From: Takakia lepidozioides
Taxonomy: Eukaryota; Plantae; Bryophyta
Assembly (NCBI GenBank): GCA_030704615.1
Contig: CM060732.1
Span: 78,244,001 to 78,308,000, forward strand
Direction: 5' to 3'
DNA: 64,000 nt
Shown here piece by piece: positions 10,719 through 39,084 of this stretch. Each line of letters begins with the position of its first letter. Position 1 is the stretch's first letter. Made by a program: the position numbers and the translations under genes. The notes under the pieces were generated by a model. It saw only the letters and a program-made list of their open reading frames with translations, did no database searches and was not told where the DNA came from.

Positions 10719-13700
10719 GGGGGATTGCTAAACCGTGAGCAGAATCTGTGAGCAGAAAATTCCATGAGCAGAATTCTGCTCACGCTTCTGCGTGTGCTCA
10801 CCTATAACCGCGGACACCTATTCGGCCTAGAAGACCTACTACTGCGGGTTGTGTCTAGTATATCATGCATACGTCATTCATCGTTATGGATGAATGATGG
10901 ATGAACGATGGATGAATGGGAGATGAATGTATGTTCGACGAATGGCACATGGATGAATGTAGTTTGTGGATGAATTCAAAACTAAGATGCATTTTTGAGT
11001 AGTGGTTGCTAAATCCACCTAGCTCTAGAGTGAACCTCTGCCCACTGGTGAGGGTTGTGATTGTCCTTTCATCAGGTATCAGAAGTCGACATAGTTGCTG
11101 ACACACAATTGCAAAGAAGGTGGAGAGGCCATTTGGTGCTTCAAACTAAATAGTTTAAAAACTGCAGATTCATTCCGACGAAGAATATTCTATGCTACTG
11201 GAGTCGGCGTCCGAAATGAAGGCAGAACTGTCTATGAAGACACTAGCCCTACTTTGCACAAAACCCTCTCTGTTTAAAAGCACAGCAGGGGGAGAAGAGA
11301 TGAGACTAAATTCCGAAGCTGCAGCCTCCGCATAACATGACAATTTAAAATCTGCTTTCGGACTTGGGAAAAATTGCGGGTTTGCAAAGAAAAGGAAGAA
11401 CCGTGGCGACCTTGGGCTCATGTACACACACACAAACAATGTAAGTCCACATACATTCTGCTGGCCCAACTTGTGCAGGAAAGATAGAAATAGAAGGATG
11501 TGCCGTCATGTCAGTGAAGTACCACAACTGAACTAGCACTTACTCACATGAGAAATCGGAATCAACATCTAGAGCATTGGGCTTTTGCAGATCCTGCTCC
11601 ATAACAATGTTCTCGGTCTGGGTCGAATGCGATAAACCCCCAGACAAAGGTGCGATGACTTGAGAGTAGAGCTGCTCGTCCCACTCCATCCCAAAAGATC
11701 CCAAAATGGTTGCAATTCACTCTCAAGATTAAGGTGTCGTCAACGACATCTTAATCCAGGCACTAAGAGGCAGGACTCCATAACTGATGTTGGCAACTTT
11801 CAAAAAAATCTGACCATGTAAGATCCTCATTCATGGCAAACTCATCCCAAGAGGGCATGGATTTAAGGTATCATCAACGACACCTTAATTCCATCTCTCA
11901 AATAACAATCAAACAAGAGAATGGCACAACACAGAACAACACAAGACTACATTGAAATTGAAAGTAGGGACAAAGGTGCAGAGTTGAGGCCACCTTGAAT
12001 CAAACGGTACCAAAGGTTGAGATAAATGCTCACACCCAAATCTAAAGAAGGCAGAGAGGTGAACTCGTACTTTATAAATAAACATCTCAAAACACGTACT
12101 GGGGATTAAGGTGTCGTCAACGACACCTTAATCCCCAGCACATGCACACACACTGCCTTACCGCCAAGGCTTGTTCGTCATCAGATTTCTTCGGGTGAAT
12201 TTTTTTGGGGTTTTTGATTTTTCCATGAATTGTCATATGCCAACTCGTACTGGGAATTAAGATGTCGTTGACGACACCTTAATCTGGCACATTCAGGGGG
12301 AAAATAAAATAAAAGAGTTTTTTTTTTTTTTTTTTTTTTTTGGGGGTGGGGGAAACTTGCTGGGAATTAAGATGGCGTTGACGACACCTTAATCTGGCAC
12401 ATTCGGGGAAGGGGAAAAAAAACAAACAAACAAAAAAAAAACAAAAATCTTTTTTTGAAAACTTGCTGGGAATTAAGATGTCATTGACGACACCTTAATC
12501 TGGCACATTCGGGGAAAAACAAAAAAAAAAAAAAAAAAAAAAAAAAACGGTTTTTTTTTTCTTTTTTTGAAAACTTGCTGGGAATTAAGATGTCGTTGAC
12601 GACACCTTAATCCCCACCACTTGCCCACACACCGCCAAGGCTTCTTCGCCTAGAAAATTTTTTGGGTTGAAAATTTTTTGGTTAATATTTTTGGAAAAAA
12701 AAAATTCAGGGATTTTGGTTTTTTCATGTGCCAACTCGTACTGGGAATTAAGATGTCGTTGACGATACCTTAATCCCAAGCACCTTCACACGCACCATGG
12801 TTCATTCATGTCGCTCATTTTTCATCCAAAAGTCATCCATCATTCATCCATTCATTTTTTCATTCATCTCAAAACCATTCAACATGCAGCTTTTCATCGC
12901 ACATTCGTACCATATGGTCGTCACCCATGAAGGATTCTTCCGTCGGATGGGGTGGAGATTGTGTCCGTACAGTGTAGTTTTTGTCCATGGCAATAGGTCA
13001 TATTCTTCCCTCGGTTGTAGGCTCCCATTCACTAATCTGCTCACGTTTGCAATCTGCTCACGCTTAAGGGATTCTACTCATGTTTACCACTTAAAGCGTG
13101 AGCATGCTCACGTGAACTGCTCACACGGTAGCTACCCTCTTGCAAATGAGACCAGTCACTCTTCATGGATCCACTTTGTTCAAGTAAACCCAAACCTTTC
13201 TCCATTTTTGGGCTTATATATATATATATATATATATATAGTGTTTTATCCTGTTTGGTGAAATTCCCATGTCCAAACAGGGTAGGGGATTAAGATGTCA
13301 TTGACGACATCTTAATTCGTGCTTCCCTGAGCAGGATTACAACTCCCCCCCATGGTTTTTTCCAGGCAAGATTTTTTTTCTTGCAACAATTTTCATGGGT
13401 TCATTTCTCATGCTGACCATACGATTTAAGATGTCGTTGACGATACCTTAATGTCTGGTCCCTGCGCTTGCTGATCCCTCACGAGACATGCTCATACAGT
13501 TGTCCATAGTCCCCTCATCTAGACAACTTTTCATCCGTGCTTCATCCAACGTTCATCCATTTCACTTTTATGTCCATCCAAAATCCATTCATCTGTGAAT
13601 GTTTCATCGTGCATTCGTGCCACTTTGTCGTCATGGAGCCTTTCTATCTTCGGTCCGATGGAGCGGAGATTGCGTCGTTGTAGTGAAGTTGGCGTCCACG

Positions 13701-13840
13701 GCAATAGGCCCACTTGTTCCCACGGTTTTGGGGTCCGCAACAGAAATCTGCTCACGCTTTGAATCTGATCACGCTTCGGGGAATCTGCTCACACATCCAG
13801 GAATCTGTTCACAGGTTCTGCTCACGGCTTTGCTGCCCTC
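10719..13840. mobile_element. Non-autonomous derivative of MULE family A
   Basis: Perfect 9-bp TSD CATGCCCAA (10710-10718, 13841-13849). Ends match 26402 and 53055. Imperfect TIRs GGGGGATTGCTAAACCGTGAGCAGA / GAGGGCAGCAAAGCCGTGAGCAGA. Retains part of the last exon of the MTase-like gene (~11540-11700) and ~10 palindromes. Confidence 0.9.
11729..13451. repeat. Cluster of ~10 family-A palindromes TTAAG(G/A)TGTCGT(CA/TG)ACGACA(C/T)CTTAA
   Basis: Copies start near 11729, 11863, 12106, 12257, 12367, 12473, 12585, 12748, 13290 and 13426. Confidence 0.9.
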
Positions 13841-15140
13841 CATGCCCAAAGACTATCTACTGTGAATACATGCTTCCTTCTCTCTACACAAAATCATGAA
13901 CTGAATTGTATACTCTATTTTGATGTGTAAAACACATGCAGAATTTTCCCTGTGTCGTTTGAGGGGCCTCAAATGACATTAATTTTTTAAGGTTATTATG
14001 GATGGGGTCCTCACAGGTCTGTAAGGTGCTCCCTTGTTTCTTCTCTTACATTTATTTTTCTCTTATGCACATACACACTCTCCTTAGTGGGGCTAGGTTT
14101 TAACCAGCGAAAGCCAGTCCCTGTCTCAGATCTTGAGGGGCTTCATCATTTGGCATCCAAGGCCAACTTTCTTCCCCTCTCCCTCACTTTTCTTATCTTT
14201 GTTTGACTCCATCTCTCTCTTGATTTTTCCCGAAACACACATGCACCAGTGAGTTGTCAGAGGAAAATCTCCACCCCAGCCGATTATTTGCCATATTATT
14301 GGTTGGTATCGGAACCGCTCAAGGGGGTCTTTTGCAAGTTATGTTGTGGGCAAATCAACTCTTCTCCAGAGGCTATCTCCGCTCACATAATACTTTTTGA
14401 CAAGGTGCAAGGTCTGAGGTCACATGCACAGTTCATTGCTACATTCCTGCCTCTAGTAAAATGTCATTTTCATGCACATACAGACTATAGTTTAGGGTTT
14501 ACCTCTCCCTCTGGTCCTGCAATATGCCTCCGTAGGTCCCAAGAAGGCTGAACTTGTAGTTGTACTAGAGATCAAATATACACAGGAGTTTTGCCTTACA
14601 GCTTGAAGCAAACTATCAATCCCATTGCCAGCAATACCATCCAGTGTGCAGGCCTAGAATGGAGATAGTGAGAGATCGGTGAGTGACCATTCTCTGCCAG
14701 TGTTGGCTCTGGTGTGCCCTTGTGGCTGTAGTCCACATGATTTTGAGGTTTCAATCCACCAGGGTATGAGAGAGAGGGTTGCAAGACTATTAAAATGTCA
14801 CCAACGACGCAATGGCGCGAGCGTTGTGCGTGAGCGCGCGAGCGTACGCTCACGCATGAGTGACGTGGTGTGAGCGTCATGTCAGCATGCTGATGCGGCC
14901 ACCTTCCTCCTTCCTCAAATAACAATGAGAGTTAGGATCATCTTCAAAAGATGATTGTAGTGCATAGCGACAGCAAGACATGTAGACTTCGAACGGTGCA
15001 ATGACAAATGTGCTTTTAAAAGTTGTCACTCAGAGCTCACTCCGTATAGTTGGAGGCCATATCATTGCACCGCCGACGAATTGATGTGAATTACACATTT
15101 CAAATCATGGTCGTCCACATACCACATTGCATAGTTGATG

Positions 15141-17418
15141 CTACCCATGTGTTGTATCCCGCTGCAATAGAGTATCGACCTCGTTGAAACTCATAGTGGC
15201 CTGGTGAATGAAGTTGTCACGTTTGGGATCGCAAACCATCATCTTAAAAAATATGAAATACAAATGTTTGCAGGGTATGAATTTACCTCTCTTGCCCAAA
15301 CTGGTTGATAGCATATTCACAAAATCAGGACATGTGCAATTGGGGAAATTGGAAACCGTGATGTCGTAGGTCCTGTCATGAACAGCAGATGTGGAAGTGA
15401 TGATTGTGAATACCCGACCATATCCTGGATGGGGTACTTCCGTGGTGCTTCCAACACGAGCTTGGAGCATTCTTGCGGACTCCACTTTGCCAAAGTGTTC
15501 AGCGGTTGGAGGGAAACGCCGAACGAGCTTTCCATCTGGAACAAAGTGTCCGCCTCCTTCATTGTTCTAGCATCTTTGTACTCTTTGCACAATTTACGGT
15601 GCTGAGTCTATATCTTTGGTTTGATGTCCGACTTTGTATGTTTTTCCAGAGATTGTGTCCAATGGAATAGACATGTACGCTCTCTTCCTCGCATTGGCAC
15701 TTTTGGGTCGCCCGATCCGAAGACAATACGAATAGCATTGAAATTTGCTTGAGCACTATCCGCCATGAAACCTGCGAAATTTGGAGATGGCAACCCATGA
15801 CACGTATCAGGGAATTCCACATGAGCTTCTGGGATTCCGTATCCTCGGATTGCATGTCACAAACTGCAATTGTCATAACTCGTTGGTACACTGGATCGTA
15901 GACATGACAAGCCATTGTCGTCCAATCCTTCACTCGTTTCACATGATCAAACATAAGAAAACAGTTCTGCAAGTCCCCAGTCTTCTGCATCCGCTTCACG
16001 AGGCTAACCCCACTGCCCTCCCCAATAGTCGACATTTTGAAAAGAAAAACTTTGATGGCACCTTGACCTGGGAATACATTGTCCTGGATGTAATCGTACT
16101 TGCTCACTCGTTTCAACTCCAAAATGTTGTCTATGTAGCCTCTGATACCAAAGCCCATTCTTAATGCATTGATCTGATGCCGAATGTTAAGTGAACTCAA
16201 AGTGGAAAAATGATCCATGACCAGGTCCAATGCTGCACCGTCAAGTTTAGTCCCCACAGAATCCCCTCCACTCAAAATATGGCTTTCCAAGAAGGATTTG
16301 CTTGCGCCAAGAGCAATTGCAGATGTTGTTGCGGATGGGTTTCTCCCAAACTCCTGTTTAATCAACCTCGATACTGTCTCAACACTCTCCCTGTAATCCC
16401 CCTTCGAGACAGGATGGTTATGGAATCCGAAATGCACACAAGCTCTTGTCATTGTTTTCAAATGGTGGACAACATAGTACATTCTTGCTCCGCAGAGCGC
16501 CAAGCAGGATGGCACAAGTTTGCAGAATTTGCAGACGAAAGTGTTTGCCGGTGGAGGGGCAGTCCCAGGCTGAAATGGATTTTCCGCCAGACCCTCCCAT
16601 TCGCTTTGATTATGAACCCCAGACTGAAAAAAATGTCTGCAATTCAAATTATCACACCTAAGGTGTCCATTGCAAATTGTTCTCCTGAAAACAAGCTGGT
16701 CATCATTCTGAATATTGGATGTTTTTGTTCTGCACCACGGGTGCCCGTCGTGTTTCTTGTCCATTCCATGCATCATGATTGTTACACCTCCAACTCGCGG
16801 AGGAGGAGGCAGCTCGAATAGGATATCGCCATCAAAAGTCTCTGGCAAGAACTTCACAGGCACCTGCTTCAAAGATTCCCAATCAATTCCTCGCAACTCA
16901 CTTTTGAATCCAGCCATTCCTCCCATCGCCCGTAATTTTGGAATGACACTACAAATCTCTTCTTCATCAGCTTCTCCAACCACAGTAGGAAGGACTGGAT
17001 TTGGAATTTCACTTATGTCATCATCGGACGAATCCGAAAGCTCAACGATTGGAGTGGAGGACGTCTGTTCTTTTTTCACCACCACCTCCCTCTTGTCTTC
17101 AACGATCGAAGCAGCAGTCTCGGGCGTCACATATGACCCAAGGGACTTTCGCCGAGGCTCTCCAAGTACTCTGTATCGACCAGGGCGCACTCTCCACTGG
17201 CTGATATGAGTCGTCTCATCACGGTTTTGGAAAGAGTATTTCAACAACTTCCCTTTCAAATCGTACACCTCTTTCTCCAAAAAGATGGAGCCATTCTAAA
17301 GCTGAAAACGGGTAGCCAAGACATGTTCCAGAACAATTGCAAATCCATTGTCAAGGACTTCCTGGGAGAACGACACTGGTTTGTCGTCAGAGAAGAACTC
17401 CGCTTCAGAGGAAGCCAT
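15141..17418 (-). pseudogene. MULE transposase, family B: GCM-like Zn domain, DDE core, SWIM finger; has a stop, frameshifts and an internal deletion
   Basis: DGHPWCRTKTSN..ICNGHLRCDNLNC..CKFCK..C..FGFHNHP (GCM-like); FDHVKRV, FMADSAQ, CLFH (MULE D, D, CxxH); CTCPDF..CKH (SWIM). Relative to family A it lacks the segment carrying the third acidic residue (junction ~15530). Confidence 0.85.
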
Positions 17419-20400
17419 CTTCCTTCCTCGCGTACGTTGATACCTTGTTATCGCAGACCTTCAGTGTAAATCGGTTTACTGATGTCTCCAGAACACAGTT
17501 GAAGAATGAGCAGAGAATATGGCGGAGGAAGCTCAGACGACGACTGTGCATATTCTGTTATTCTTTCCAGATATGCAGCCGTCCATTTTAATTACTTTTC
17601 TTGTGGGCCCAGTGGTCAGAGTATCCCTAGGAGCAATGTCGGCAGCTGTTAAACCGTTAATCAGAACCTCATTAACAAACACAATAACAAGCCGACTTCC
17701 TGGAAGCATGCCACAAGGTCTGAGGGTGGGATTGCAGATTAAGTAAATGTATCTTTATACTACTACCAATGATCATGTGCACCTGGAAAGTTCAAAATGT
17801 GAAACGAACGTGGGGTTGGCTAACAAGGATGACCGTGTATGATATCCCAAAATTTGTCATCAAACTCTCGTTCATTTACATATATTTGTCTAAGATTGTG
17901 CGCCAAGATTTCTGGGATTCGCTGTTATTTTTAAATATTGGAACTGTTCTAATAAAAAACACGCCGTTTATTTTGGGCGACACATGCCAGTCATCGATAA
18001 CTGAATTCGAACAGCTGTACACTAATTGCTGGCATGTGCACTAATAAGGGAACGACTATGTGTAACGGTCACGCGAGAGGGAATCCGATGCTTCTAGAGA
18101 TAAGCAACAACAAACGCAATCCCGCAAGAAATCGGAAGTCACTTCGTTTTCCAACTTTTCGCGCTTAGAGGGAGAGTGGTAGTCAAGCTGGAGAGGGTTT
18201 CTTCTACTATACGAAAGACAAGAAAGTCTCTTTAACTTACTTCCCTTAGAGAGAGACGCAAAGCAAGAGAGCAAATGACGAGGCGTCGTTTGTTGGAGAA
18301 CACAGGGCCAAGGCAGTAAGTGAACGCGGAGACTGATTCACAAGAGCAGACCGAGACTGAGGCAGCGGCTGTGACACAGTCGGTGATAACAGTGCGCGTT
18401 GGAAACCAGCCTGTGGATGCAGAGATGTCTCACAGGGAAAATTGAAGGAGGTGGAAGCACGAGGAACGCTAAACCGGGAGAAGGTCCAGAAACCCTAGAG
18501 CAGACAGAAATTCCAGCAGATGTGAGAGGGAAGAGGAAAGCTGCAGAAGGGGATCCAATTTCAAAACCTAAGAAGGCGCCAGTAAGTTTTCTGTAACTTA
18601 CATTTCATTGTTGAAGATCTGCGTAGAGATTGAGTTCAATGTCCCAGAAAGGGATTGTCGCTACCGACCATCACCACGAAACAACGGTGATTTGCTTTGT
18701 ACTCCTCTGTTAAGGGTTTACCGCACAATGAGTGGGTGACTGACGGTACCGTCAATCACCGTTGTTCAGATCAAACAGTCTGTCTGATTGCCTTTCAAGC
18801 AGTCCTTCCTCTTCCCTTCTTAAGTAGGAACATGTGATTGAAGTCTGCTGAATTGCGAGCGTCGTTAACGCCATTCGATTCAGGTAGAGTATGGATTGCA
18901 AAGTACTCTCGATATAGACAGGAAACCGTGAATGCTTGCAACGGTAATCACAATGGAGTCAATCTGAATAATCTGCACTTACTGTCCGCCCTAAACTATA
19001 CTGAATGTCGTTGCCGCAAATCACTTACACATATATGTCATTACACAACACCGATCCGGCAGGTCCTTATCTTTTGTGATTGTCGTTAACGCCGTTCACT
19101 ATCGCTCTCGCTTTTGTTTTGAATTCGGCAGGATCAGCTTTGCTTGTGTAGATGGTTCTGAATTTGTTTCACACCATTCCTTGTGAGTTTCTTCGAGATA
19201 GAGTGATGGTCGTTCACTATTTGCATATTACTCAGTCAGATTTGAATGGCATCGTGCAGAAAACTGTGAGGTCCAAGCCTACAGGATCAGAGGGGAAAGG
19301 ATCTGGAGATGGGGAGGAGTCTGGAAAAAGCTCAGAGAATACAGATGAAGCAGATGAATCTGAAGTGCACTACCTTGACAAGGTGAAAGAACTCATGTCA
19401 TTCCAGAAGGTAAACCTCAGGAGGTTATAAGGGACATGCTCGTATCTGGGAGGCGTCTGGACGTCCCTCTGTGCCGGATGATATCTATGCCTGTTGTGCG
19501 TCCACCTCTTTCCCATGACATAACAAAATTGGAGAGTGATTTTGTGCATGGATACAGACTTGGTGGTCAAGTTTTTTATGTGTCACTAACGGATATAAAT
19601 GCGAAAAGCACATTAGTGTCTCCAGAGATCAGTGATAACTGGGATGAGTGTTGGAAAGATGCCAATGAGGAGTTCGAGCTGGGCCTCATGATGGGAAAGA
19701 ACACCCAGCAATTCTGCAACCACGTGTTCTACGTCTGGGACGGCAATCACCGATTGCTGGCATGGATGGGATACATCCAGAAACACCATGCGAAAGACAA
19801 AGACAAGCATGTTGTTGTGGAGGCAATGGTTTTGGATCCTGGAAACGACATCGCTAGGCTTCTTACAGCTATGCACGACGTGAACAAGTAAGTCATCCTA
19901 GAGATTTCATTCCCTCTATAGTGTCTTGTTAATCCCCAAAAAACAGAGTTAAGGAGTGCAATGTTTGCAATGTTTTTGCAGATCGACAGAGAAATCGCAT
20001 GTGACAACAAGCTTGGTCCACACACTATTCCGAATTCAGAGGATTGGTCTGATGAAGCTGGATGATTTTCGGACAGTACTCCCACCCAATATAATCAAGA
20101 AGTGTGAAACAGGAAGAGCTGCAGGCACTTGGTATTCTTTGACTCGAGAGGCGTTTCTGGAGTACATGTATGCGGTAAGCCCGAGTCTGTACTCAGTTTA
20201 CTTTTTGAGTACATGTTTATAGTCCCTTCGGTGCTTATCACTATTTGAATCAATGCAGCAAGAACTGGCAGAGGCAGCTGAGAAGGGAAAATCCGAATAT
20301 TACTGCACTACACCAGAGGAACTAAGGACATCAAAGGGTGTGGAAGCAGCAATAAAGAAGGAGTTTGAAATGCGAAGAACCAAATTGATGTCCGACTTCG

Positions 20401-21089
20401 GAAAGCAGCTTAGAATAGTAGATCCTGGACTTGGTTCTGAGTTCCTTCAGCAGATCAAATCTCACTATGACAAGCATGTGCATCCGGAGATGCAGCAGGA
20501 GAAATTGCACCGGTTGGCCATATCCATGGTCGACCCACAAACAAAAATAAGGTGGCTGGAGATATGGAACTCAGATCAGACAGTAAAGGACTTGAATCAG
20601 TTCCCAAAGAGCACAATACAGCCTGGCACAAAGGTGGAAGGAATCAGTGATTTGGTGTTTGATAACTGGCTCCACAAGGCTACATTTTGGAGTCAGGTGT
20701 GTATTCAAATAAGCCGTTTTCTTTTCTTCAATTATGTGATGAGTACCTTATTTGCAATACTGACAAATATACAATTTGCAGCTCGAAAAGCGCGCCGTCA
20801 TTGTGCTGGAACAGACTTTGAAGGACTTGAACATTTCGATTGTTTCCCCTCCCCAAATGTCATTGGAGGCATACATAAGGAAGTGGAGAGGTCTCACGTG
20901 GAGGTACTGTTTTTTCCGGGAGTTCTCCAAAGATGGTAACATTTTACGGTCCAACGACTTTGACAGTCAGGTTGGAGGAGAGTGGGCCATGATGCGAGTT
21001 GTGTACAGGTGCAATATCATACTGGAAACTCTACTGCATTTTTTGGGAAATAATTTGGCTTCATAAGGATTGTAATCATAGATCCAAAT

Positions 21090-22226
21090 TGAATGTCGTT
21101 GACGACATTCACTTATTTGTCTGAGTCATTCTTAAGCGAGAATTTGAATTCACCTGGATTAGGAGCTTAGGGGGTAATTATAGTGTCCCTGATTAGAATT
21201 GATAATGTCCCTGAATGGCGTTGATGACATTCACATCCAGAGTTGTTGAGATGTCCTTAGAGTTATGTAAGTTTTTGTAATATCCATAGATTTTACAGTG
21301 AGGGTTCCTCACTTCAGTTTGCTGAATGTCAATGCAGACAATCAGTTGTTCTGCATTGCTTTTGCCTCTTGTGAGAAATCTTGAGGCTTGATTAGTTGTG
21401 TTATCAGATATCCGGAGTGAATGTTGTTGACGACATTCACTTCTATGTCTGTGTCATTCACCAGCGACAATTTGAATTTATATGGATTGGGAGCTAATTA
21501 AATGGTTCCTTGTTGGTAATTTTGTGAATGGCGTTGACGCCATTCACATCCACTGTTATTATGAGGTCCTCAGTGTTATGTTCGTTATGAATGTCAATTG
21601 GAAACCAGTTTTTGGGGAGGGTTCCTTAGTCGACTTTCTATTTTCCATCAAATGAATCAAGGCCCCCCACATTGAGGCACAATGAAATTACCACTAGTAC
21701 CTCAGCAACCCATCTGTTGAAAACCTTGCTTCATGGATGTCAAACCCCACAATTTTTGAACATTTTTCATGATGCTAGAATGTTGATCACCAAGATGTTG
21801 AAATTGTTGTGCAGGGTGTTGGGGAGCTTATATAACCTTGCAGACTTGCGGTTTCTTCATTCATGTATTAATGACGTGGTTGCATAATATCTCCCGCAAA
21901 GCTGCACCAACTATGTGGCCTCTTTCCACGACTGGTTCTTGACTGTGGGTAACATTGTCTCGCAAGAGCATCCATTTCATTGTAGATGTCCTCGAAATCA
22001 ATCTCCTTGAAATCGACCAAGATGTTGTACAAGATGCAACAGGCATGGACCTGAGAAATCATTAGGCTTGATTAGCAGTGTATTCACAAATCCAAAGTGA
22101 ATGTCGTTGACGACATTCACTTCTATGTCTGTTTCAATCCAAAGCGAGAGTTTGCATTCACGTGGATTAGGGTGTTTTTACAGTATCATTGAATGGAATG
22201 TTTTAAATGGCGTTGACGACATTCAC
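21090..22226. repeat. Six family-B palindromes (G)TGAATGTCGT-TG-ACGACATTCA(C) within one intron
   Basis: Copies near 21090, 21212, 21417, 21524, 22095 and 22204, arranged as three pairs in a triplicated unit. Confidence 0.9.
21660..22065 (-). mobile_element. Possible PIF/Harbinger transposase C-terminal fragment inserted in the intron
   Basis: HACCILYNILVD resembles the ACCILHN end motif of Harbinger transposases, and the segment interrupts the triplicated intronic repeat. No TSD found. Confidence 0.4.
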
Positions 22227-24699
22227 ATCCGGAGCAGTCGTGTGGTCCTGAAAGGTCCTTGGAGAGTTCTCAGAGCCATTTCATTCTATGTTTTTTTCAT
22301 TCTGTGTTACTTGTATCTTACTCACTTCGCGCTTTGGTGGGTTGGGATTTATCTTATGTTTAACAGGTACACGAAATATGTGCTTATGGAAGGAAATCAC
22401 CTGAGCGGTATTCCAGACTATCTTGACATGTGGTCGGACCCTGCAAACGATCCAACCATGTATACTGCAGGGATATTGAAGGACTGGAGTCCTTCTCACT
22501 TCAGAGACTGTGGCTGGTACCTTGACTGCCCACCGGAGCACACGACCTTTCAAGAACAGCATATGAAATATTTGAACAATAATGTTGAGATGCTGGCGCC
22601 TCTGACTGACAAAGAGTACCAAAGAAACATAGCAACATTGGCTGCCAAGGAGCCTGATGATCAGGGAACGCCGCAGAAGGGAAAGAAGGCGGGCCGCAAA
22701 CCAAAAGACAAGGCTCTTGATGTCATAGCCATCTCACCAGCAAAGCCAAAGGACAAAGACAAGTCCAAAGAGAAGAAAAGGACAAGGGGAAGGAGAAAGA
22801 AAAGGAGATGGAGAGTGGGCAGGACTTCACTGCTGGAAGATATACCCACACAGTTCAGTGCGTGTTCGATGCCAAGCCACACCCTTCCCATTCTGATTCG
22901 GCAGGAGAGATTAAAATTGTCAATGAGGGTTGGCTGGCAATGATGCAGAGTCGAAAGAGAGGATACACTGGGGTGCCTTCGCCTACCTGGGACAACATAA
23001 TCTCATTCTTCAATTTGGTGAGAATTCCAGTTTCTTTCCTTTTTCTCTAAAAGTTTCATTGGCAGTATTTCAGTCTGGTTCTTTGAAAACATTATTGCCA
23101 TCGTTCTTATAAAAAAACATGTCTGTTGCAGGTGAGCACAGGTCCCACCTTCGTGTGCGGTGTGCAGAAAACATATGCGGCTGACATTGTCATTCTCGAC
23201 ATCCCGGATGGCCAGGCTGTGCCAGAAGTTCTTCCAAAGGGCAAGACGCCAGGCTGGAACAAATTCGAGGACAACTACTGGAGTTGGGTGTTCGGGTTCT
23301 GTAATAATTTCTTGCTGATGCAGGGACACTTCTGCTTTTTCAATCATGTGACAATGATAGTCGTCGGGCATTGGCATCATACCTCAAGTCTTCAGGGTTT
23401 GAAGTTTTGCGCACATGGAATTGTGTGAACAGCCTCTACCTTGTGAAAGGGGGTTTCCCTGGTCAGCTGGTATGGCGTCTCCCTTCTGCTTGTGCTTTCA
23501 TGATGAGTTTCAATGTTCTTTGCAGCTCCACTCTAGTAGAATCTGTCATGATCGACACCTATCATCACCGATTCGTGATAAAAATGATTGTTTTGTGCCT
23601 GAGTTCTGAATAGCCTATGTACACACTTCCACTATAGATTGTGTTTACCACACTAACCTGTTATCTTTGGCAGACGAGGATGTTCGAGGCGATCTGCCTG
23701 CGGAGGATTCGCACCTCCAAGACACCATCCTCCATCCGCAGCTTTGAGATTTCTGACCAGGGTTGTTTCGTCAACCCCCCCTATGAGCCGCATGTCGATG
23801 ACATTTTGTACAACTTCATGCAGTCCAGTCAGACCCTGAAGAGACCAGATGGCACTCCCTGGAGAGGTGCAAAGGAAAAATCCCAAGCGTTCATGCAAAT
23901 ACTGTTGGAGTCATGCAGCCACCACTCTGCACGGGTGGTCGATCTTTCTGTGTCCACAAGTTCGTTCTCTCCCTTCCGAATTGATTTTCTTTCACCTGTT
24001 CCATTTGCTTAAATCCCCCCTACCAAACTGTTCATGTCCTCCTGTCTGGTGGAGGAGCAACTTACCATGCATACGCAGGCGGAAGAAGCATTTTTGGCAT
24101 GGAGGGTGATTTTGACCTCTACAACACAGTGCTCCTCCCCCTTTTGTCTGGCTCCACTTCAGGCACACAGACTGATTGGATTCAAATTCGAAATGATGAT
24201 GATCCCGAAGATAAGCAGGTCGAAAAACGACTTTTCATGTGAGTAAGTGCTAAACCCACTTTGGGAGTCATACTCAATTTCTCAATAACATGAAAGTTAC
24301 AGTAATAACTTTTTCAGGCTGTCTTTCAGGAAAAGCAGCGGTGGATCTTCAGGTTATATAGTCATTTGTGGCGAGTCTGTTTTCGACAGCCCCCTTTCCA
24401 ATTTTCTGCTTCCTGGTTATGCCGAAGCAATGGCACTTCACGCGGCCGAGTCCCTATCCCGTGAATTTTTACTGCCCGGCCGTAGGTGTAGCCAGCGTAG
24501 ATCCGGAGTTCTTAAATACTTAGACTTAGATGCAGAGGAAGTGGGGATACATTGTACTGACTCTGAGTCAGACTGAACTATGTTCTTTTACTATTATGTT
24601 TCTTCCTCTTTGGAAAACGTTGAATCCCCTTCCTCCACCGTAGTTGTTCCTTTGGAAAGAAAAATAATCAAAGAATCAACTACCATTTAAATTGCAATA

Positions 24700-25125
24700 T
24701 GTATGAATCCATCTCACAAACCTCCCTCACTCTTGTCATATCCATTGTGCTTTCATCTACAGTGTATTCATGCGTGCTCCATTCATGAATGTTTTCCTTT
24801 GTTCAACATCCATTGTGCATTCATCCTCTGTACTCTTTCATCCACCCGACAAACCTTCCACACTCATGTCATATACGTTGTGCATTCGTCTAAAGTTTTA
24901 GTCATGCATCTTCCTGTCATGAATGTTTGTCATTGCTCAACATCCATTATACATTCATCCATTTGACTCTTATCCATCCCTCATTCATCCATCTACATTC
25001 ATTTTTCACACTCATCCATCTATTTATCATCCAACTATACATTCATCCATCTACATTCATTTTCACACTCATCCATCTGTTTATCATCCAACTATACATT
25101 CATCCATCCTTTATTCAATGCCTTT
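24700..25125. repeat. TCATCCAT-rich low-complexity subterminal tract
   Basis: Repeated CATTCATCCATC units with a ~58-bp tandem duplication. Equivalent tracts lie near both ends of family A (10870-10985, 13530-13620, 26540-26645, 52760-52850). Confidence 0.7.
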
Positions 25126-26672
25126 TATTATGTCGTCCAGCTTGTTTCCGCGGTAAAGGGTGCCAATCCGCGGGAATACACTCCACTTCTTTCTGGGTGC
25201 ATGGTGACGCGGTCTTCAAGTGTGATGAGGTGGAGTGAGCCCCGTGATGTGGCATTGGTGCAAGGTGACGTGGCGTGAGCGCAGTTGCGATCACGCGACC
25301 AGGCTCACGCCGAGGCATCCCTGAAATGTCACATTCCAGACAATGATGCTGGTTGAGATTTCCTCCTGTTCCACCTTCCCCTCTGATGGGACTTTTGAAT
25401 CCCTCCAACCGGACTTTGGCACATATGTCAGATATGAAGAACTTCACTTTAAAAGATGTATATGCTATGCCAGTGAGAGCAGGCACAACATACCCTCATT
25501 GACCATTCTGTGTCAGATCCACTGGAAGTAATCTGAGAACTGAATGATCAAAGTGCTCTTGAAGCATGCTCCCCTATAGAGAGCATGCAAGAGAACATAT
25601 TTACTTGTTGACTAGTCTGCTTGCCTGTCGGGTGTATTCAAGGATGCCATCTGTTTAGGGAACAATCAGAACCTGCTGCAAAATTTGAAAAGAAAATCAC
25701 AACAGGCATGAATCAACATGTACCATTTCACCAGCGCTGCAACATTCTTTCCAGACTTCCTTCTTGGCCTCTTCTTGGAAATTCAAATCTTTGGACCGTT
25801 TGTTACACACACTTGAATGAATTGAGATGGCCTTCTTACTCCTATAATGAAAACAAAGATAGTCAAGAGTTTGAGTGAAATAGGACGCACCAAATTTGTT
25901 GCAGGGATGTGCCAACAACTCAAAAGAAATCCTTCATTGAAGCCATGTGCATGGACAAGTGAGAGAGTGGGAGGGGACTCTTTTACCAGAAGTGCAAAGC
26001 ACACACTACATTTCCTTCATTACTTGTTGATTCTTCACAAGAGGAGTTCCCGACATCTGAGACATCAACCTTGATCTGCAAGCTCTTACTCAATAAAATG
26101 TCGCTCTACACTCTCTTCTACAAAAAGTGCTCCAGATAGCTACTAACTCTAAAACTATTTGTGCCACCTCAATGAGTATGACCAAGGCAATATATATGTA
26201 CCTACACCATGCCTGTGTAACAAAAATGCCCATAGACCCAGAGAAAGAGAGTAAGAAACTTGTTAAACTGTGTTGTCCATGGTCACATGGCCAGAAATGA
26301 GTGTGACAATTTTCTCAGTGCCTTCACTCACATGCCCGTGCAGATCAGCGATCACTGATCTAACATAGGAGCTAAAGTCCTATTCATATCTCTACGTAAT
26401 TGGGGATTGCTAAACCGTGAGCAGATTCTGTGAGCAGAATTCTGCTCACGGATCTGCATGTGCTCACCTATAACCGCGGAAACCTATTCGGCCTAGAGGA
26501 CCTATTACTGCGGGTTGTGTCAAGTATATCATGCATACGTCATTCATCGTTATGGATGAATGGTGGATGAACGATGGATGAATGGGGGATGAAAGGATGT
26601 TCGACGAATGGTACATGGATGAATGTCATTTGTAGATGAATGCAAAACTAAGATGCATTTTTGAGTAGTGGT

Positions 26673-27827
26673 TGTTAGAGGACTGTCTGGGACTTAGACA
26701 CTTATACGGGATCTGTAGGGTACCCTTAATTTTTGCACAGACTGAGACCAACAGGAGCCTTAGGGGTGACAGAAGCGCACTGTAGAGGGGGGTTACACAG
26801 CCCGTCACAGCCCACACAGCCCACACAGCCCGTCACAGTCGTCACAGCCCACACAGCCAACACAGCCCGTCACAGTTGTCACAGCCGACACAGCCAACAC
26901 AGCCCGTCACAGCCGACAAAGCCCACACAGCTCGTCACAGTCGTCACAGCCCACACAGCCAACACAGCCCGTCACAGCCCACACAGCCCACACAGCCTGT
27001 CACAGTCGTCACAGCCGACACAGCCAACACAGCCCGTCACAGCCCACACAGCCCACACAGCCTGTCACAGTCGTCACAGCCGACACAGCCAACACAGCCC
27101 GCCACAGTCGCACAACCAGTCACAGTCCGTCACAGTTTCACACAGCCAGTCACAGCTTGACACAGCTGTCACGACCATAGGGAACGAAGAGCAGGACAGG
27201 GAACGACTGTGGGGAACAACACCTGCAAATGGAACATGTTAGTTCACGGACGACGGTTAGTGAGGAAAACGGTTAGAGCCACGGGTAGGAAGATAAAGGG
27301 AGAAGCAAGGACGGAGAAGGGGGGATTCTTGGAAGCACTTGAGGGGAGGACTTCTGGGTCATGCATGGGAGGAGATCGGGCGGAGAGGAAGATCGGAAGC
27401 CAAGATGGAGAGCGCGGTGAAGGAGGAACGAGGATTAGTAGATGCTTGTTATATGCAAAGCGGTAGTGATATAGTAGAGCAGATTAGAGACACAATGGCT
27501 TCGGCCTGATACCTGATAAATCCTAATCGGATACTTATACGATACAATCACACTGTGTAGAGAGATCTGAGTGAAGCTGTGGAATGAATGGATGAGTTGA
27601 TGGAATCCAATAGATTGATAAAGCAAACTGATACTTAATTATCAATGGTAAGGTAGCTAACATGAATGCCAAAAGGGAAACAAATAGGAAACACCCCCAT
27701 GATACACTAGCTGTAGGTCATGACTGATTGTTCTGCGCGGGCTGAGTACTTAGAGATTTCCAACTCTTCTATCTTGGAGTTTCCGCCTCGGATAGCGAAG
27801 GGATGGGTGAGTAAAAGCAGCGCGACA
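26673..27827 (+). repeat. 5' LTR (TG...CA) with CACAGCC tandem repeats
   Basis: Near-identical to 39085-40082; longer because of extra repeat units. Confidence 0.95.
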
Positions 27828-27855
27828 TTTGGCGACCATACTGGGGAACTGAGTC

Positions 27856-28416
27856 ATGAACAACCTAGATGTGACAGGCATCTGGTGGGATCATGGTGGT
27901 TGGACCATTAAAGAATTTGAAGTGAATCAAATTCCCTGTGGAACGAAGGAAGAAAGATTGTCCAAACAATTCTTTCAAAGGTTCTTGGAATTGCCAGACG
28001 GTTGTAAAGAAAATATTCTTAAGCGAGTGCATGATGCTGATCCGGAATGGGGTCTGGAAAAAGGAGTGATAAAGATTTATCAGGTAGCCTGTAGAGGAAG
28101 AGCACGTTGGTTACCAACATTGGTTTATGTGATAGCATTGCTATCCATTAAGCGAGTAGAGTTTGAAGGCTGGGAAGAAAGAAAGGTGAATGTTTATACT
28201 CATATGCATGAAGAGCTTGTACTGGTAAAGAATTGGATTCCAAAGGATATTTTGTGGATCAAACTCACACCAAGAACAGCTTTTCAGACTTGTTTGCCAT
28301 ATGGTTATATGGTAACGGAGACTTCAAGTATAGCCAAGGGTGCATTGAAGCTTGAAAGAAACCCAGGCATATACGAGAGATATTACAGAAGAGAGTTTTG
28401 GTTATTGCCACATTAA
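27856..28416 (+). CDS. Unassigned 186-aa ORF between PBS and gag (extra ORF or stop-separated gag N-terminus)
   Basis: ATG-initiated ORF in the same frame as the 28438 ORF, separated from it by TAA and TGA. Confidence 0.5.
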   Translation: MNNLDVTGIWWDHGGWTIKEFEVNQIPCGTKEERLSKQFFQRFLELPDGCKENILKRVHDADPEWGLEKGVIKIYQVACRGRARWLPTLVYVIALLSIKRVEFEGWEERKVNVYTHMHEELVLVKNWIPKDILWIKLTPRTAFQTCLPYGYMVTETSSIAKGALKLERNPGIYERYYRREFWLLPH

Positions 28417-28437
28417 AAGAAATGAAAGACATGGGAC

Positions 28438-31241
28438 ATGAGTGATGAAAGAGAAGCTAGACGCCAGAGATATTCAGCAAAAAGAGAAAGCTATCTGAAA
28501 GCTAATTATCCATATCTTTGGGAGAGAGGAATAGACATAGGGGAATCATCTGGACCTCTCACACCATTAAGATCAAAGAGTACATCACCTATACCGGAAG
28601 AACTAGAGTTGGATGCCACTCCTTCTGTTTCTTTGCAAGAAAGATTAAGGGAATTGGTACAGGAAGAAGATCAATCACGAGGTGAAAGATCTGAGGTACA
28701 TCCCTGGATAAAAGATTTGACAGAAATCTTTGATAAGAGTTGGCATGGAACACCAAAAGCAGGAACTCCAGTTTCTGAAGCAGAAGGTGAAGAAGGAGAA
28801 GAGGATGTGGCAGAGCCAACGGAGAGTTCAGACTCTCCAACACCATTACAGTTGAGTTACATGAGTGAAGAAGAAACCCAAGGGCAGAACTTGGAGGATG
28901 AAAACAGAGAGAAGAAATTGGAAGAGGAAGAATATGAAGAAGTAGATCCAACAGCTGAGGTTGAGACTACAACCAGGACATCCCAACCCGTTGGACCTGG
29001 ATCAAGTGGAGCACTTGGATCACAGGCCAACGAAGGTGTCGGCTCAGGGGGATCAGGCGGGCGGCCTGGATCTGGCTCTGGGGGGACAGGGAGTGTGGGA
29101 AGTAGTGCAACTGAAGCTGGGAATACTGTGAATATCGTGGGGCTAGAAGCAGGGAGTGCTCAAGGGCCACCACTTGGTGGAAGATCCACCACAAAAACAA
29201 CAGGTCCAGAAGGACCAGCACCAGCAAGGGTGCCAGCACCTGTCAGTGGGCAGAAGGTAGGGCCACAGATGGCGTTACAACCAACACGGGCAAAACCACC
29301 CTTTCCCTTTTTTTTCTATAAGGGGATCCCGATGTACACATTAGCCAATTTGAGCACATGTGTATAGTGAACAATGAGAATGGCGATGATGCCAAGATGA
29401 GATTGTTTCCTTGTTCACTTATCAAGAAAGCAAGTGAATGGTATGCAAGATTCCCTGATAATCATTTCCTAACCTGGAATGGCTTGAATACAGCATTTCG
29501 AAATAGGTTCAGGACAAGTAAAACTGAAGATGAAGTGTATGGAAGTTTACAACAGTTAAAGCAAAAGAAGCATGAAACTGTTGAGGAGTATATGGAAAAG
29601 ATGGAATTGATGATGAAAAAGCTGGCTGCAGTACCAGCACCCGGTTTACAGAAGACTTGGTTTGTGAGTGGACTAAGACCAGAGTTGCAAAAGAAAGTGG
29701 ATATGTTACCCCATAATACAGTGGAGGAGGCATTTGAAACTGCAAACAGAATTGAGCAATTGGGAATGCTCAGGAGAGAGAAAAGAGATGATGAGGACTC
29801 TGAGGATGAGTCAGATGAAGAAGAAGAGCAAGAACTAAAAAGGAAGAGTAAGAGAAAGGAGAAGTTGAAGAGGGATAACTATGAAAAAAGATTGGAAGAA
29901 ATCTTGAAGAAGTATGCCACAGAGGCTGCAACACATTGGAGGAAGGGTGTATGGTGTGCAAAGTGCCAAAATGAAGGCCATACCACCACAGAATGCCACA
30001 TGAAGGAGAAACACTGTACTATCTGTAAAATGGATAACCATTCTACTGAGAATTGTTACTACAACAGAAGGACAGCTGCAAGAGAACCTAGGCAAGTAAG
30101 GGTGCATCAGGTGCAGCCCCAGCCAAGAAGAAACAATGATCAGGACCACTATGGTAGGTCTGGTGGTTATAACAATGGCATGGAAGGGAGAGGTAATTCA
30201 AGAGGGAATTACCAAGGAAATTCCAGAGGCAACTATCAGGGTAATCCAAGGGGGAATTACCAGCCCGGGAATCAGGATTATAGAAATAATCCAAGAACAG
30301 ACCAAGGGCGAGGACCCAATGGTGAAGAACTATGTTACTATTGTAATCAGCCAGGACATCGCAGGGCAGCCTGTTCATTCTGGATAAGACACCAGAATGA
30401 GATGAGAGCTCCTGTGAATGAGGGCCCAGTGGTGGCAGCTCACATGGTTAGGCCATGTGTTGTACCAGAAGTAAGTACAATGATAGTAACAAGAAGTAAA
30501 GCCAAACTAATACCTCCAGTAGTAGAGGAAGAAGATGATAATGAAGGTGGCAATGATATGCCTGAAGATGAAGAGACTTGGAAAGATGAGAAGGAACTGC
30601 ACAAGGAAGTGGCAGATACTATAAGGGAAATGCAGAAGAGTACTGATATTCCTGTGGCAGATTCCTCTGATTCTGATGGAGAAGAAGAAGGGAGTGAAGA
30701 AGAAGGGAAGAGAGAAGATGCAGACATGCAAAGTAATGAAGAAACTTTGGCTGAAGTAATATGCCAGACCAAAGCAGAAATTACCATTGGACAGCTATTA
30801 GCTGTGGCACCTTATTGTAGGCACAGGCTGTATCAAGCAATCAATCGAATTGCCCAGGAGACAGGAAACACAGACCTGAACAGCAAGGTGACAAGTTATA
30901 ATGTGAAGCCGGAAGGGCGAGAAACAGTCATGGACTTTGATGATTCTATGCCAGTAATCCAATTGAGAATTGGAAGCACAGAACTAACTGATGTACTGAT
31001 AGATGGAGGTTCTGGAGTAAATATCATGACAGACCAATTAAGGAAGAAGCTTGGTCTAAGTAACATGAAACCAGCCCCATTTACAGTAACAATGGCAGAT
31101 CAAAGAAGTGTACAGCCATTGGGATTAATAAGAGGAGTTAAGATACAGATACAGAAGATGATCTTTATGATCACAGTAACTGTGTTGAAAATGGATGAAG
31201 TCATGGAGGCTTACTCCTTATTATTGGGACGTCGTGGCTGA
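28438..31241 (+). pseudogene. gag: Gypsy gag-protease (frameshift ~29310)
   Basis: Retrotransposon gag block RLFPCSL..ASEWY; three CCHC knuckles (CAKCQNEGH..C, CTICKMDNH..C, CYYCNQPGH..C); protease VLIDGGSGVNIM. Confidence 0.9.
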
Positions 31242-34200
31242 AACAGGCCAGGGTATTCCATGACTGGAATTCTCAGTTACTAACCGTGCATAATGGGATA
31301 CACGAGATACAAATTACCACAAAGAAATCTAGTAGATTACCTGCTACAAGAAGACCTCGAGGAGTCAGAGAGTATGACTGGAAAGGAGGACTGGATGAGG
31401 AGCAGGAAGCTACCCTATTTGCTGCACACCCAGAGTGGGAGCAGGTTGCAGAGATGCGGCTGGAAAGCCTAAGTTGTTTGAGAGGTATCTGCTGTGGTGT
31501 AGTGACAGCAACACCAACTGAAGAGGAAACCAGCATTTACCCATCACATTTCTATGAAGAAAGAGAAGGAGAAATAGAAATCCTAGAAGAACCAGCCACT
31601 GTGAGCTTACAGGATGAAGTGGTGACTGGTTGGACAATCACAGCTGATGAGCAGGTGAGGGAAGTGAATGTGGGAACTAAAGAGGAACCGAGGATGGTGA
31701 AAGTAGGAGCTGATTTGGAGCCGGAATTCTTCGAAGAAGCTAAAAGCTTGTTCATCAAATACAGAGATGTATTTGCTTGGAGCTATGAGGATCTAAAAGG
31801 GATACCACCTGAAGTCTGTCAGCATAAGATTGAACTGGAACCAGGGTCAGTACCAATCAAGCAGGCGAGGTACAGAATGAATCCCAACTACGCACAGAAG
31901 GTTGGAGAAGAGATAAAGAAGTTGGCTGAGGCTAAGTTTATATACCCAATAGAGTATACAACTTGGTTGTCACCCATTGTTATAGTTCCCAAGAAGAATG
32001 GCAAACTAAGAGTATGTGTGAACTATAAGAAGCTGAATGCTTGTACGAAGAAAGATCCTTTCCCCTTGCCATTCACAGAAGCAGTATTAGACACTGTGGC
32101 AGGCCATGAGATGTACTCATTCATGGATGGCTTCAGTGGTTATAATCAAGTGCAAGTGGCAGAAGAAGACCAAGGGAAAACAGCTTTCATCACAGACTGG
32201 GGGGCTTATGCATACAAAGTCATGCCCTTTGGACTTTGTAATGCACCAGCGACCTTTCAGAGAGTGATAAGTGAATCTTTTCATGAGTATCTGGATGATT
32301 TCATGCAGGTATTCTTGGATGATTTCAGTGTGTACAGCTCTAAGAATGAGCACTTGCATAAATTGGAGTTATGTTTGGCCAGATGCAGGATGAGAGGTCT
32401 GGGCCTGAATCCAGAGAAGTGTACTTTCTGTGTGAACTCAGGGGTGCTTCTGGGACACATTGTGTGTAAAAAGGGACTTTTTGTGGATCCCAGGAAGACA
32501 GAGGCCATTAAAGCCTCTCCACCACCAGTGAATGTTAAGAATCTAAGGAGATTCCTTGGGCAAACCAGTTATTACAGAAGATTTGTCAAAGGTATGCACA
32601 AATAGCAGCACCATTGAGCAAACTACTGAAGAAAGATGCAGTGTTTGCCTGGACAGCTGAATGTCAACAGGCGTTTGAGGAACTTACACTGTCAGTAACA
32701 ACTACACCTGTGCTGATTAACCCTCACTGGCATGTAGTATTTCATGTTCACTGCGATGCATCAGGAGAAGCATTGGGAGCGGTGTTAGCCCAGAATGTTA
32801 CAGGAAATATAGATTCACATGTGTACTATGCTAGCAGGTTGATGAACAGTGCTGAAAGGAACTATAGCACGACGGAAAGAGAAGCATTGGCAATGATCTA
32901 TGCAGTGAAGAAATTCAGCATTACCTGTTGGGCAAGAAGTTTATGTTCTATGTGGATCACCAGGCTCTGATATACCTAGTAAACAAACCTCTGATAAGCG
33001 GAAGAATAGCAAGATGGTTGATAATCTTGCACGAGTTTGAGTTCGAGGTTGTTTACAAGCCTGGGAACTACATCTTGTGGCGGATCACTTGTCACGGTTA
33101 TCAACAGGAGAACCAGCCACAGGAAAGATGATCAATTACCAGATGCGAGTCTCTTTGCAGTGGAGGTGCAGGGAAGTGCAGATGACTGGTTAGATTGGCA
33201 GTGGCCAATCAGATACTACCTTGCTCATGGTCAGTGCCCACCTAGTTATGGAAGGAGCAGAGGAAGAGAATCGCTATCAAAGCTTTACCTTATACTATGG
33301 TAGGAAGCAGAATGTATAAGCTAGGACCTGATGGAGTACTAAAACGATGCTTGTACCACCATGAAGTAAATAAAGTTTTGGAGGAAGTTCATAAAGGAGT
33401 GGCTGGAGGTCATTTTGGAGAAGAGACTACCAGTAGGAAGATACTACTCGCAGGTTACTGGTGGCCTACTTTGTTCAAAGATGTACACGAGTATTGTCAG
33501 AGTTGTGATGAATGTCAGAGGCTAGGACCTTTGCAGAGATCTGGAAGGATGGCCTTGCATCCTACAATGCCTACGGAACCATTTCAGAAATGGGGACTAG
33601 ACTTTGTTGGACCAATTAACCCACCAGCCAAGAATACACGGAGCAGGTACATAATTACAACCACTGATTATACTACGAAGTGGGTGGAAGCTAAAGCTTT
33701 GAGGGACAACACAGCCAAGTCCACAGCAAGGTTCCTGTACGAGAACATACTTACACGATTTGGCTGTCCCTTAGAATTTATCAGTGATCAGGGAAGTCAC
33801 TTCATGAATGAGACCATTGAGTTGTTGACTAAAGAGTTCATGATTGTACATAGAAAGAGTACAACATATTACCCACAGGGTAATGGGCAGGCAGAGGCTA
33901 CCAACAAAATACTATGCACTATCTTGGCTAAGATAGTCAATGCAAACAGAACGGATTGGGATACAAAGCTGCTGACAGCTTTGTGGTCATACAGGACTTC
34001 CTATAAAGTCACCACTAAGTATACACCATTCCAATTAGTTTATGGTATGGAAGCCTTACTTCCAGTGGAATTCCTGTTACCTACCATGAGAACGGAGTGG
34101 GGAAAAAGAATGGAATTGCAAGATTCCATTAAGGTCAGGAAACATGAATTATACCATGTGGAAGAAGTACGTGCTAATGCAGCTGATAATATGACCAGAA

Positions 34201-39046: not shown

Positions 39047-39084
39047 ACCGTGAGGACACGGCTTTTTGAGGGGGGAAGGGGTAA

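Follow-up and report, generated by a model that had tools for sequence, protein, structure and literature searches.

Family-specific palindrome arrays around a common centre in moss transposons encoding an accessory protein with ParB-like and methyltransferase-like folds

The VANC protein of VANDAL21 in Arabidopsis binds 9-bp target motifs, tandemly repeated in introns and in upstream regions, that differ from family to family; both motif binding and hypomethylation have been demonstrated (PMC5735166). In red algae, Plavaka elements carry an accessory gene, PAG3, whose product joins an N-terminal domain weakly similar to ParB to a 2-oxoglutarate oxygenase and which adjoins tandem inverted-repeat arrays, and a PF01555 methyltransferase fused to a SET domain is encoded by the separate gene PAG2; PAG3/PAG2 accessory genes occur in red-algal Plavaka, Zisupton and Mutator elements (bioRxiv 10.1101/2025.02.11.637652). 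Here we analyse palindrome arrays in two cut-and-paste transposons, elements A and B, located in a 64,000-nucleotide stretch of the moss Takakia lepidozioides (assembly GCA_030704615.1, contig CM060732.1, positions 78,244,001 to 78,308,000, forward strand). This stretch, referred to below as the window, consists of nested eukaryotic transposable elements; nothing in it looks human, and it involves neither a toxin gene nor one of an animal virus. Elements A and B each have two divergently transcribed genes, one for a SWIM-type transposase and one for an accessory protein, and each has its own type of palindrome. Comparison with three further families (C, D and E) showed that the palindrome arms are almost wholly replaced yet complementary, while the centre, CG-K-YR-M-CG, is nearly constant. 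As each family has its own arms around a shared centre, the palindromes are most likely landing sites of an element protein. To the specific reading that they are family-specific cis-acting sites for a putative dimeric binding protein encoded by the element, most likely the accessory protein, we give about an even chance.

Like VANDAL21, the moss elements combine a transposon-encoded accessory protein with family-specific, non-coding arrays, whose motifs differ between related families and which turn over by tandem duplication. The VANC motifs, however, are 9 bp long, non-palindromic and in a single orientation, whereas the moss sites are palindromes of 26-30 bp. The moss accessory protein has ParB/sulfiredoxin (Srx)-like and methyltransferase-like folds (VANC was compared by description only), the moss transposase is without a Pfam match, and binding and hypomethylation were shown for VANC, while the moss sites are known from sequence alone. 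With PAG3 the moss system shares a weak ParB-like N-terminal domain beside tandem inverted-repeat arrays that vary across families, as well as self-binding that is likewise only proposed; with PAG2 it shares a PF01555-type methyltransferase among the accessory genes. Here the ParB-like and methyltransferase-like domains are in one protein (PAG3 and PAG2, too, were compared by description only), the hosts are mosses, not red algae, and the transposase is also different. The moss system is thus set apart from VANC and PAG3 by both folds in one protein, another transposase, a bryophyte host and five families with a common centre.

In element B, six sites of the form GTGAA-TGKCGT-TG-ACGMCA-TTCAC lie in an accessory-gene intron (Table 1) that splits an Arg codon, the frame resuming as ..VVYR / YTKYVLMEG... 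A sequence-only reading of the window had given one exact string for all six; it fits the site at 22097, while the other five differ from it at one to three positions each. The sites form three pairs with a within-pair distance of 106-122 bp. Two of these pairs sit in a duplicated unit of ~330 bp, and the third comes after an unrelated insert of ~480 bp (about 21560-22040). A likeness of this insert to the C-terminus of a PIF/Harbinger transposase, noticed by eye, was not confirmed by Pfam and was discarded. The homologous intron of element A, with the frame ..KRLLYR / YFRFVLIPEN.., holds three palindromes of the type TTAAGG-TGTCGT-YR-ACGACA-CCTTAA (42566-42591, 42701-42726 and 42913-42938). 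Both counts, six and three, agree with the earlier reading, and so does the dissimilarity of the introns outside the palindromes: sensitive blastn returned only ATGTCGTTGACGACA with short extensions, i.e. the 15-bp core. The placement in this intron, in turn, was only part of the picture, as palindromes were also found elsewhere in both elements. In B, degenerate copies occupy the 5′ region, where they adjoin a separate 26-bp palindrome, GGTGACTGACGGTACCGTCAATCACC (18735-18760). In A, a second intron holds a site, others follow the transposase, and a 2.3-kb array abuts the ParB-like exon on its upstream side, probably the first intron or the intergenic region between the divergent genes.

The abundance of the sites in the window far exceeds chance. 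There are 11 exact copies of the core TGTCGTNNACGACA (0.00 expected), 17 matches to the B pattern (0.03 expected) and 29 to the A pattern (0.00 expected), with the total of A-type sites varying from 29 to 33 with stringency. All core sites (at most one mismatch) fall within element A, element B or a non-autonomous copy of A, and none was found in the remaining ~37 kb of the window. A scatter of palindromes independent of the elements, which the earlier reading had named, for the whole genome, as a result that would speak against it, was not observed within the window. The symmetry is broken at the central dinucleotide (CA or TG) and at position 7, which gives each site an orientation. Information content is high over about 28 bp only and near zero in the spacers. 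The CpG observed/expected ratio is 0.6 for the window and 0.2-0.6 for the spacers; both core CpGs are kept in 27 of 39 sites. Across families, array spacings range from 42 to about 250 bp.

The non-autonomous copy is a 3.1-kb deletion derivative of A. It contains a piece of the A intron (11704-11996 = 42541-42835, 86% match). Its ten A-type palindromes (11729-13451), of which the first three point one way and the other seven the opposite way, are more densely spaced than those of parent A. The derivative is flanked by a perfect CATGCCCAA duplication (9/9, or 8/8), and the flanks of A match at 8 of 9 positions; target-site duplications of 8 and of 9 bp are both compatible with these two insertions. 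Element B has the same two genes as A in mirror arrangement, with frameshifts in both. Comparison of its two end regions by blastn gave no convincing inverted repeat; a weak candidate for the ends, 14791-25335, has flanks that match at 7 of 9 positions, as read from the sequence.

Family-specific arrays are a general trait of this element group. Transposase homologues are numerous in public assemblies and metagenomes, and exclusivity of the palindrome types was judged across 86 fetched loci (labelled L), among which L002, L027, L028, L053, L056, L071, L075 and L081 retain the divergent gene pair. Family C (L083, a 9-kb Logan contig) has an intron of about 1.08 kb after ..RVLYR with seven sites of a third type, AATCAACCTTGCGT-TG-ACGCAAGGTTGATT; four more lie just upstream of the exon block with the ParB-like domain, and another six, repeating every 42 bp, are found on the downstream side of the transposase gene. 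The family C transposase is 73% identical to that of B and 56% to that of A, and the accessory protein is 51-60% identical to those of A and B, by exons compared; the closest accessory relatives, P0128 and P0129, show 58% identity. Family D (L086) has four TAATCCTTCGG-TG-CCGAAGGATTA copies 145 bp apart upstream of the ParB-like exon. Family E, from Ceratodon purpureus (L089), has eight CAGCCTRCGG-TG-ACGCAGGCTG copies between the divergent genes, including three units 138 bp apart; its intron after LLYR is kept (~500 bp) but has no palindromes. In distant relatives the corresponding intron measures about 80-100 bp, and the intergenic region holds inverted motifs of other kinds, specific to each element, while the gene bodies of L087 and L088 have short introns and no arrays. 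Among the 86 loci, each palindrome type was restricted to its own family, in line with the original claim that the variants are family-specific; it follows that the A/B/C clade acquired the palindromes of its YR intron as a derived trait.

In Ceratodon purpureus, the hypothetical protein M758_9G084500 is the homologue of the C-terminal part of the accessory protein. An unannotated ParB-like exon, homologous to window 19436-19891, lies at 8757-9188 of L089 (CM026442.1), upstream of the start of M758_9G084500 (locus position 10001), and the public model of this gene looks truncated at its 5′ end. Upstream of the transposase homologue in L001 (2421-8146) there are ten CTTGCGC-YR-GCGCAAG sites at a ~180-bp period, and a second composite repeat holds three other palindromes (GAATGCASTGCATTC, GTACCCGGGTAC and GTTACACYRGTGTAAC). 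Clusters of ATGCCA-YR-TGGCAT with 36/72-bp spacing lie downstream of the transposase homologue in L033 (14167-14275) and upstream of it in L046 (5572-5788).

To compare the arms, forty sites of the five families were aligned ungapped and scored as 14 arm pairs. Results showed that 87.8% of the arm-pair cells are complementary and that both sides changed in 13 of the 14 pairs. The covariation score was 0.64, compared with 0.20 for shuffled sites (none of 500 shuffles reached 0.64) and 0.04-0.16 when the partner was slid, a contrast that rests on only about five independent families. The symmetric change of both arms proposed for A and B thus holds over the wider set. The 14-bp core said to be kept is common to A and B only; A, B and C together retain just CGT-YR-ACG. 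The further proposal that site and protein co-diverged stands as far as the variants are family-specific, but the distance between sites is not proportional to that between proteins. The B and C transposases are 73% identical, and yet their half-sites agree at 5 of 13 positions, whereas the C and E proteins, at ~40% identity, go with agreement at 9 of 13; D and E half-sites agree at 10 of 13. Since C-E and D-E share so many half-site positions, the B arms look like a derived jump. For the accessory proteins, the distance is about the same in every family pair. Between B and C, the transposases are 73% identical and the accessory proteins about 51-56%, a mismatch hinting that families have exchanged modules or that the accessory gene evolves much faster.

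That the accessory protein joins a ParB/Srx-like to an amino-methyltransferase fold was supported by structure models, Foldseek and profile matches. The AlphaFold model of the N-terminal exon has a mean predicted local distance difference test score (pLDDT) of 85.6 and an invariant loop, DGNH(R). Its top 50 Foldseek matches in PDB were nearly all ParB, Noc, sulfiredoxin, PadC, KorB, SbnI or SspE, with 6sdk as the best (E 4.5e-3, probability 1.00, TM 0.49). The protein is not a ParB proper: the loop reads DGNH(R) instead of GERRxR, no helix-turn-helix (HTH) was detected in the following exons by Pfam and alignment, and alignment of the middle region gave no recognisable DNA-binding motif. The C-terminal domain has the fold of a beta-class amino-methyltransferase with circularly permuted motif order (IV before I). 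A PDB search with its family profile, in which motifs IV and I aligned, gave no matches other than CcrM and the DNA methyltransferase of 5hfj/5hek (E 0.006); PDB sequence searches with single exons gave nothing useful. With the C-terminal model, Foldseek returned 177 matches at E<=1e-3, led by CcrM (4.4e-9) and followed by M.BceJIV, M.PvuII, N4CMT, MboIIA and RsrI, which are N6-adenine and N4-cytosine methyltransferases. Motif IV reads D-[ILVA]-P-[DE]-[GSN] in P0258, P0265, P0267, P0306, P0308, P0315, P0336 and both window copies, the catalytic tetrapeptide (D/N/S)PP(Y/F/W) is absent from all homologues inspected, and motif I is degenerate. An NPPY in copy B (exon 23641-24012) was considered as the catalytic motif and ruled out, as it is not conserved in homologues. 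The best PF01555 score, 20.8, is under the gathering score of 26.7. Given the aberrant motif IV and the sub-threshold Pfam score, canonical methyltransferase catalysis is doubtful.

The bacterial ParB-parS and Noc-NBS systems resemble the moss system in having multi-copy palindromic sites of about 16 bp or more, a protein of the ParB/Srx fold (modelled in the moss case) and a specificity that can be switched by symmetric site changes. They differ in the HTH, which was not found in the moss accessory protein, and in the nucleotide-binding loop, DGNHR in the moss and not GERRxR. In addition, the moss arrays lie on a eukaryotic chromosome with no partition function, and their sites are longer, with family-specific outer arms.

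The sites and where they lie, their family specificity, the covariation of the arms, the two protein folds and the separate terminal repeat are shown by the data above; that a protein binds, which protein it is and what binding does are points that we infer from these patterns. A sequence-specific protein of the same transposon family would bind the palindromes as a symmetric dimer. The arrays occupy the only non-coding space left free in the element: the introns of the accessory gene, the region upstream of it and the DNA that follows the transposase. They grow and turn over by tandem duplication. The centre changes slowly (A, B and C have CGT-YR-ACG) and the arms are particular to each family, which would allow a family's protein to find its own copies alone. 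As with VANC and VANDAL, the most likely purpose of binding would be to direct to the element some activity on DNA or chromatin, or to shield it from silencing. Counted in favour of an element-encoded reader are the enrichment over chance, the confinement to elements, the sharp island of ~28 bp, the CpG retention, the like architecture in five families, the symmetry of the arms, the sites kept in the derivative and the VANC and PAG3 precedents. The accessory protein is the favoured reader for three reasons. The element ends bear another repeat, GTGAGCAGAWTC; the Cys/His-rich regions of the B and C transposases are 70-78% identical, but the half-sites agree at only 5 of 13 positions; and beta-class DNA methyltransferases read short palindromes, just as ParB-family proteins load at palindromes.

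Several observations weigh against this assignment. The ParB-like assignment is a fold similarity at modest scores, with no sequence-level match, and neither an HTH nor any other DNA-binding domain was recognised in the accessory protein by Pfam and alignment. Furthermore, ParB does not read DNA through its ParB/Srx domain. Site distance follows the overall distance of neither protein. Sites placed within the accessory gene share its history through linkage alone. L001, L033 and L046 have arrays, yet the sequence fetched around them, reaching 10 kb upstream if the contig is long enough, showed no accessory gene. Finally, copies A and B in the window are both decayed, so that nothing is functional there now.

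Unlikely, but deserving serious attention, is the reading that the transposase itself binds the palindromes, as internal or subterminal sites that would aid assembly of the transposition complex in the manner of TnpA motifs or the subterminal hexamers of Ac. It would account for the arrays in L001, L033 and L046, in whose fetched sequence no accessory gene was found, for the flip in site orientation between the left and right of A and its derivative and for the sites retained by the non-autonomous copy. The transposase also has suitable parts, a Cys/His-rich N-terminal region and a C-terminal SWIM zinc finger (21.2 bits in the L083 homologue vs. a gathering score of 19.6; 17.3 bits in window exon 15141-15485). 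At the true ends, however, it is GTGAGCAGAWTC that is found, in three to five copies per end of A and the derivative (in inverted orientation at 26417-26449, 10735-10783 and 13744-13825); this repeat is unlike the palindromes and is the more natural transposase site. Moreover, most palindromes lie 0.4-7 kb from the ends, and 8 of 13 half-site positions differ between B and C despite the high identity of their zinc-finger regions noted above. The TnpA motifs of En/Spm (CACTA) elements are similar in being short, present in many copies, often in inverted pairs, and subterminal, in being bound by a second element protein (a putative one in the moss) and in being kept by non-autonomous derivatives. 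En/Spm belongs, nevertheless, to another superfamily with 3-bp duplications and CACTA ends, and its TnpA motifs are 12 bp long and lie within about 300 bp of the ends, whereas the moss arrays are intronic and up to several kb inside.

As for the superfamily of the transposase, Pfam scans of all window open reading frames (ORFs) of both genes gave only the sub-threshold SWIM match. No Pfam family, the MULE domain PF10551 and the MuDR DNA-binding domains included, was matched at E<=0.01 by 31 homologues or the window ORFs, and a KDZ model likewise had no match at E<=0.01 among the 31 homologues. The transposase profile had no match in Pfam or PDB, which leaves the superfamily between Mutator-like and Zisupton-like. 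A C-terminal SWIM zinc finger, as in the L083 homologue, fits either of them. Target-site duplications of Mutator (MULE) elements are 9-11 bp long. Those of Zisupton/KDZ elements are 8 bp (PMC12730594).

A reading in which no protein recognises the arrays is improbable; they would then be structure-prone repeats that propagate themselves, tandem duplication spreading a founder unit and hairpin-templated (quasi-palindrome) repair holding the arms complementary. Array units within a family are indeed related by duplication, and templated repair is able to maintain palindrome symmetry. Yet conservation is limited to the palindrome while the spacers decay, CpGs are kept in the sites amid CpG-poor DNA, the placement recurs in five families and the deletion derivative keeps the sites. 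Still less probable is that the palindromes are methylation targets, with the accessory domain placing N6-methyladenine or N4-methylcytosine on a GTYRAC centre. The beta-class fold of the accessory protein speaks for it, and GTYRAC, noted early on as an amino-methyltransferase target, is present at the A, B and C centres; it is missing from those of D, E and L001, however, and the domain has D-[ILVA]-P-[DE] in place of (D/N/S)PP(Y/F) in all homologues inspected, together with the degenerate motif I and the PF01555 score given above, so any link between methylation and GTYRAC is speculative. There is, finally, only a very slight chance that a host factor recognises the sites or that they work as RNA hairpins in the intron: TGACG, the core of plant TGA-type bZIP sites, is present in the A, B, C and E centres and many sites are transcribed within intron RNA, but 26-30 conserved bp with family-specific arms are unexplained by a common host factor, TGACG is missing from the D and L001 centres, the sites extend to the region past the transposase and occur in both orientations, small-RNA precursors have longer stems than these 12-13 bp, and Rfam had no match in the window.

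The window also holds two retrotransposons. A 13.4-kb long terminal repeat (LTR) retrotransposon is nested in element A (about 26675-40080); its LTRs (26953-27825 and 39207-40080) are 97.6% identical, and it has gag/Ty3-capsid, reverse transcriptase and integrase ORFs. It also contains 9/19/28-bp tandem repeats (26738-27164 and 39178-39418) and 10-bp tandem repeats (34540-34826) that end the integrase-bearing ORF 33297-34826. A further LTR retrotransposon occupies 54192-61163 (minus strand). Its 724-bp LTRs (54192-54915 and 60440-61163) are 99.2% identical, its pol ORF (57443-59413) encodes a zinc knuckle, protease, reverse transcriptase and RNase H, and it looks like a young insertion.

Table 1. 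Coordinates of the genes, introns, palindromes and ends of elements A and B and of the non-autonomous copy in the window
Feature	Position	Strand	Remarks
B accessory gene	about 18399-24250	+	approximate span
B 5′ region, probable first intron of accessory gene	18735-19099		three degenerate B-type sites: 18857, 19001, 19076
B accessory coding blocks	19436-19891, 19956-20222, 20253-20714, 20776-21008, 22367-22760	+	19436-19891 ParB/Srx-like
B accessory-gene intron after ..MMRVVYR	21009-22366	+	GT 21009-21010, AG 22365-22366, phase 2
B-type palindrome 1	21089-21112		TTGAATGTCGTTGACGACATTCAC
B-type palindrome 2	21211-21234		CTGAATGGCGTTGATGACATTCAC
B-type palindrome 3	21417-21440		GTGAATGTTGTTGACGACATTCAC
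B-type palindrome 4	21524-21547		GTGAATGGCGTTGACGCCATTCAC; both arms altered, T>G and A>C
B-type palindrome 5	22097-22120		GTGAATGTCGTTGACGACATTCAC; exact consensus
B-type palindrome 6	22203-22226		TTAAATGGCGTTGACGACATTCAC
B accessory methyltransferase-like coding blocks	23105-23502, 23647-24012	+	frameshift near 23371-23400
B transposase	15141-17280	-	zinc-finger region and core 15559-17280; SWIM exon 15141-15485; frameshift near residue 495
Element A, whole	26402-53055	+	ends GGGGATTGC...CTGCCCTC; flanks TACGTAATT / TGCGTAATT
A accessory gene	40603-44700	-	decayed; in-frame stop right after intron; possible further upstream exon
A accessory exons	44089-44700; 41199-41681, 40603-41241	-	ParB/Srx-like; methyltransferase-like blocks
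A-type palindrome, second intron of A accessory gene	41683-41708		
A homologous intron after ..LLYR	42470-42978	-	same position and phase as B intron
A-type array, about 14 sites	44747-47014		period ~137 bp, one orientation throughout
A transposase	48447-51561	+	frameshifted pieces; SWIM part 51058-51561
Five A-type palindromes downstream of A transposase	51975-52679		orientation opposite to 44.7-47.0 kb array
Terminal repeat GTGAGCAGAWTC, right end of A	52972-53040	-	
Non-autonomous deletion derivative of A, 3.1 kb	10719-13840	+	both ends retained

A wider proposal, which we regard as unlikely though worth stating, is that bryophyte transposons turned a prokaryote-type ParB-methyltransferase fusion into a self-recognition module, one that would load on its own parS-like arrays, modify or shield the DNA by spreading or by acting locally and be respecified by symmetric arm switches, as happened in ParB and Noc. 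If true, it would supply a eukaryotic series of natural, orthogonal pairs of protein and site. Should the transposase read the arrays, they would represent an unusual internal architecture for a transposase family with no Pfam model. Should the accessory protein be the reader, as we favour, this would be a second, independent kind of transposon self-recognition after VANC, built on a scaffold of prokaryotic ParB/methyltransferase type and present in transformable mosses such as Ceratodon. The five families offer ready cognate and non-cognate pairs for mapping switches in DNA-binding specificity, and may help to explain how transposons evade or steer silencing and perhaps serve as orthogonal DNA-targeting modules.

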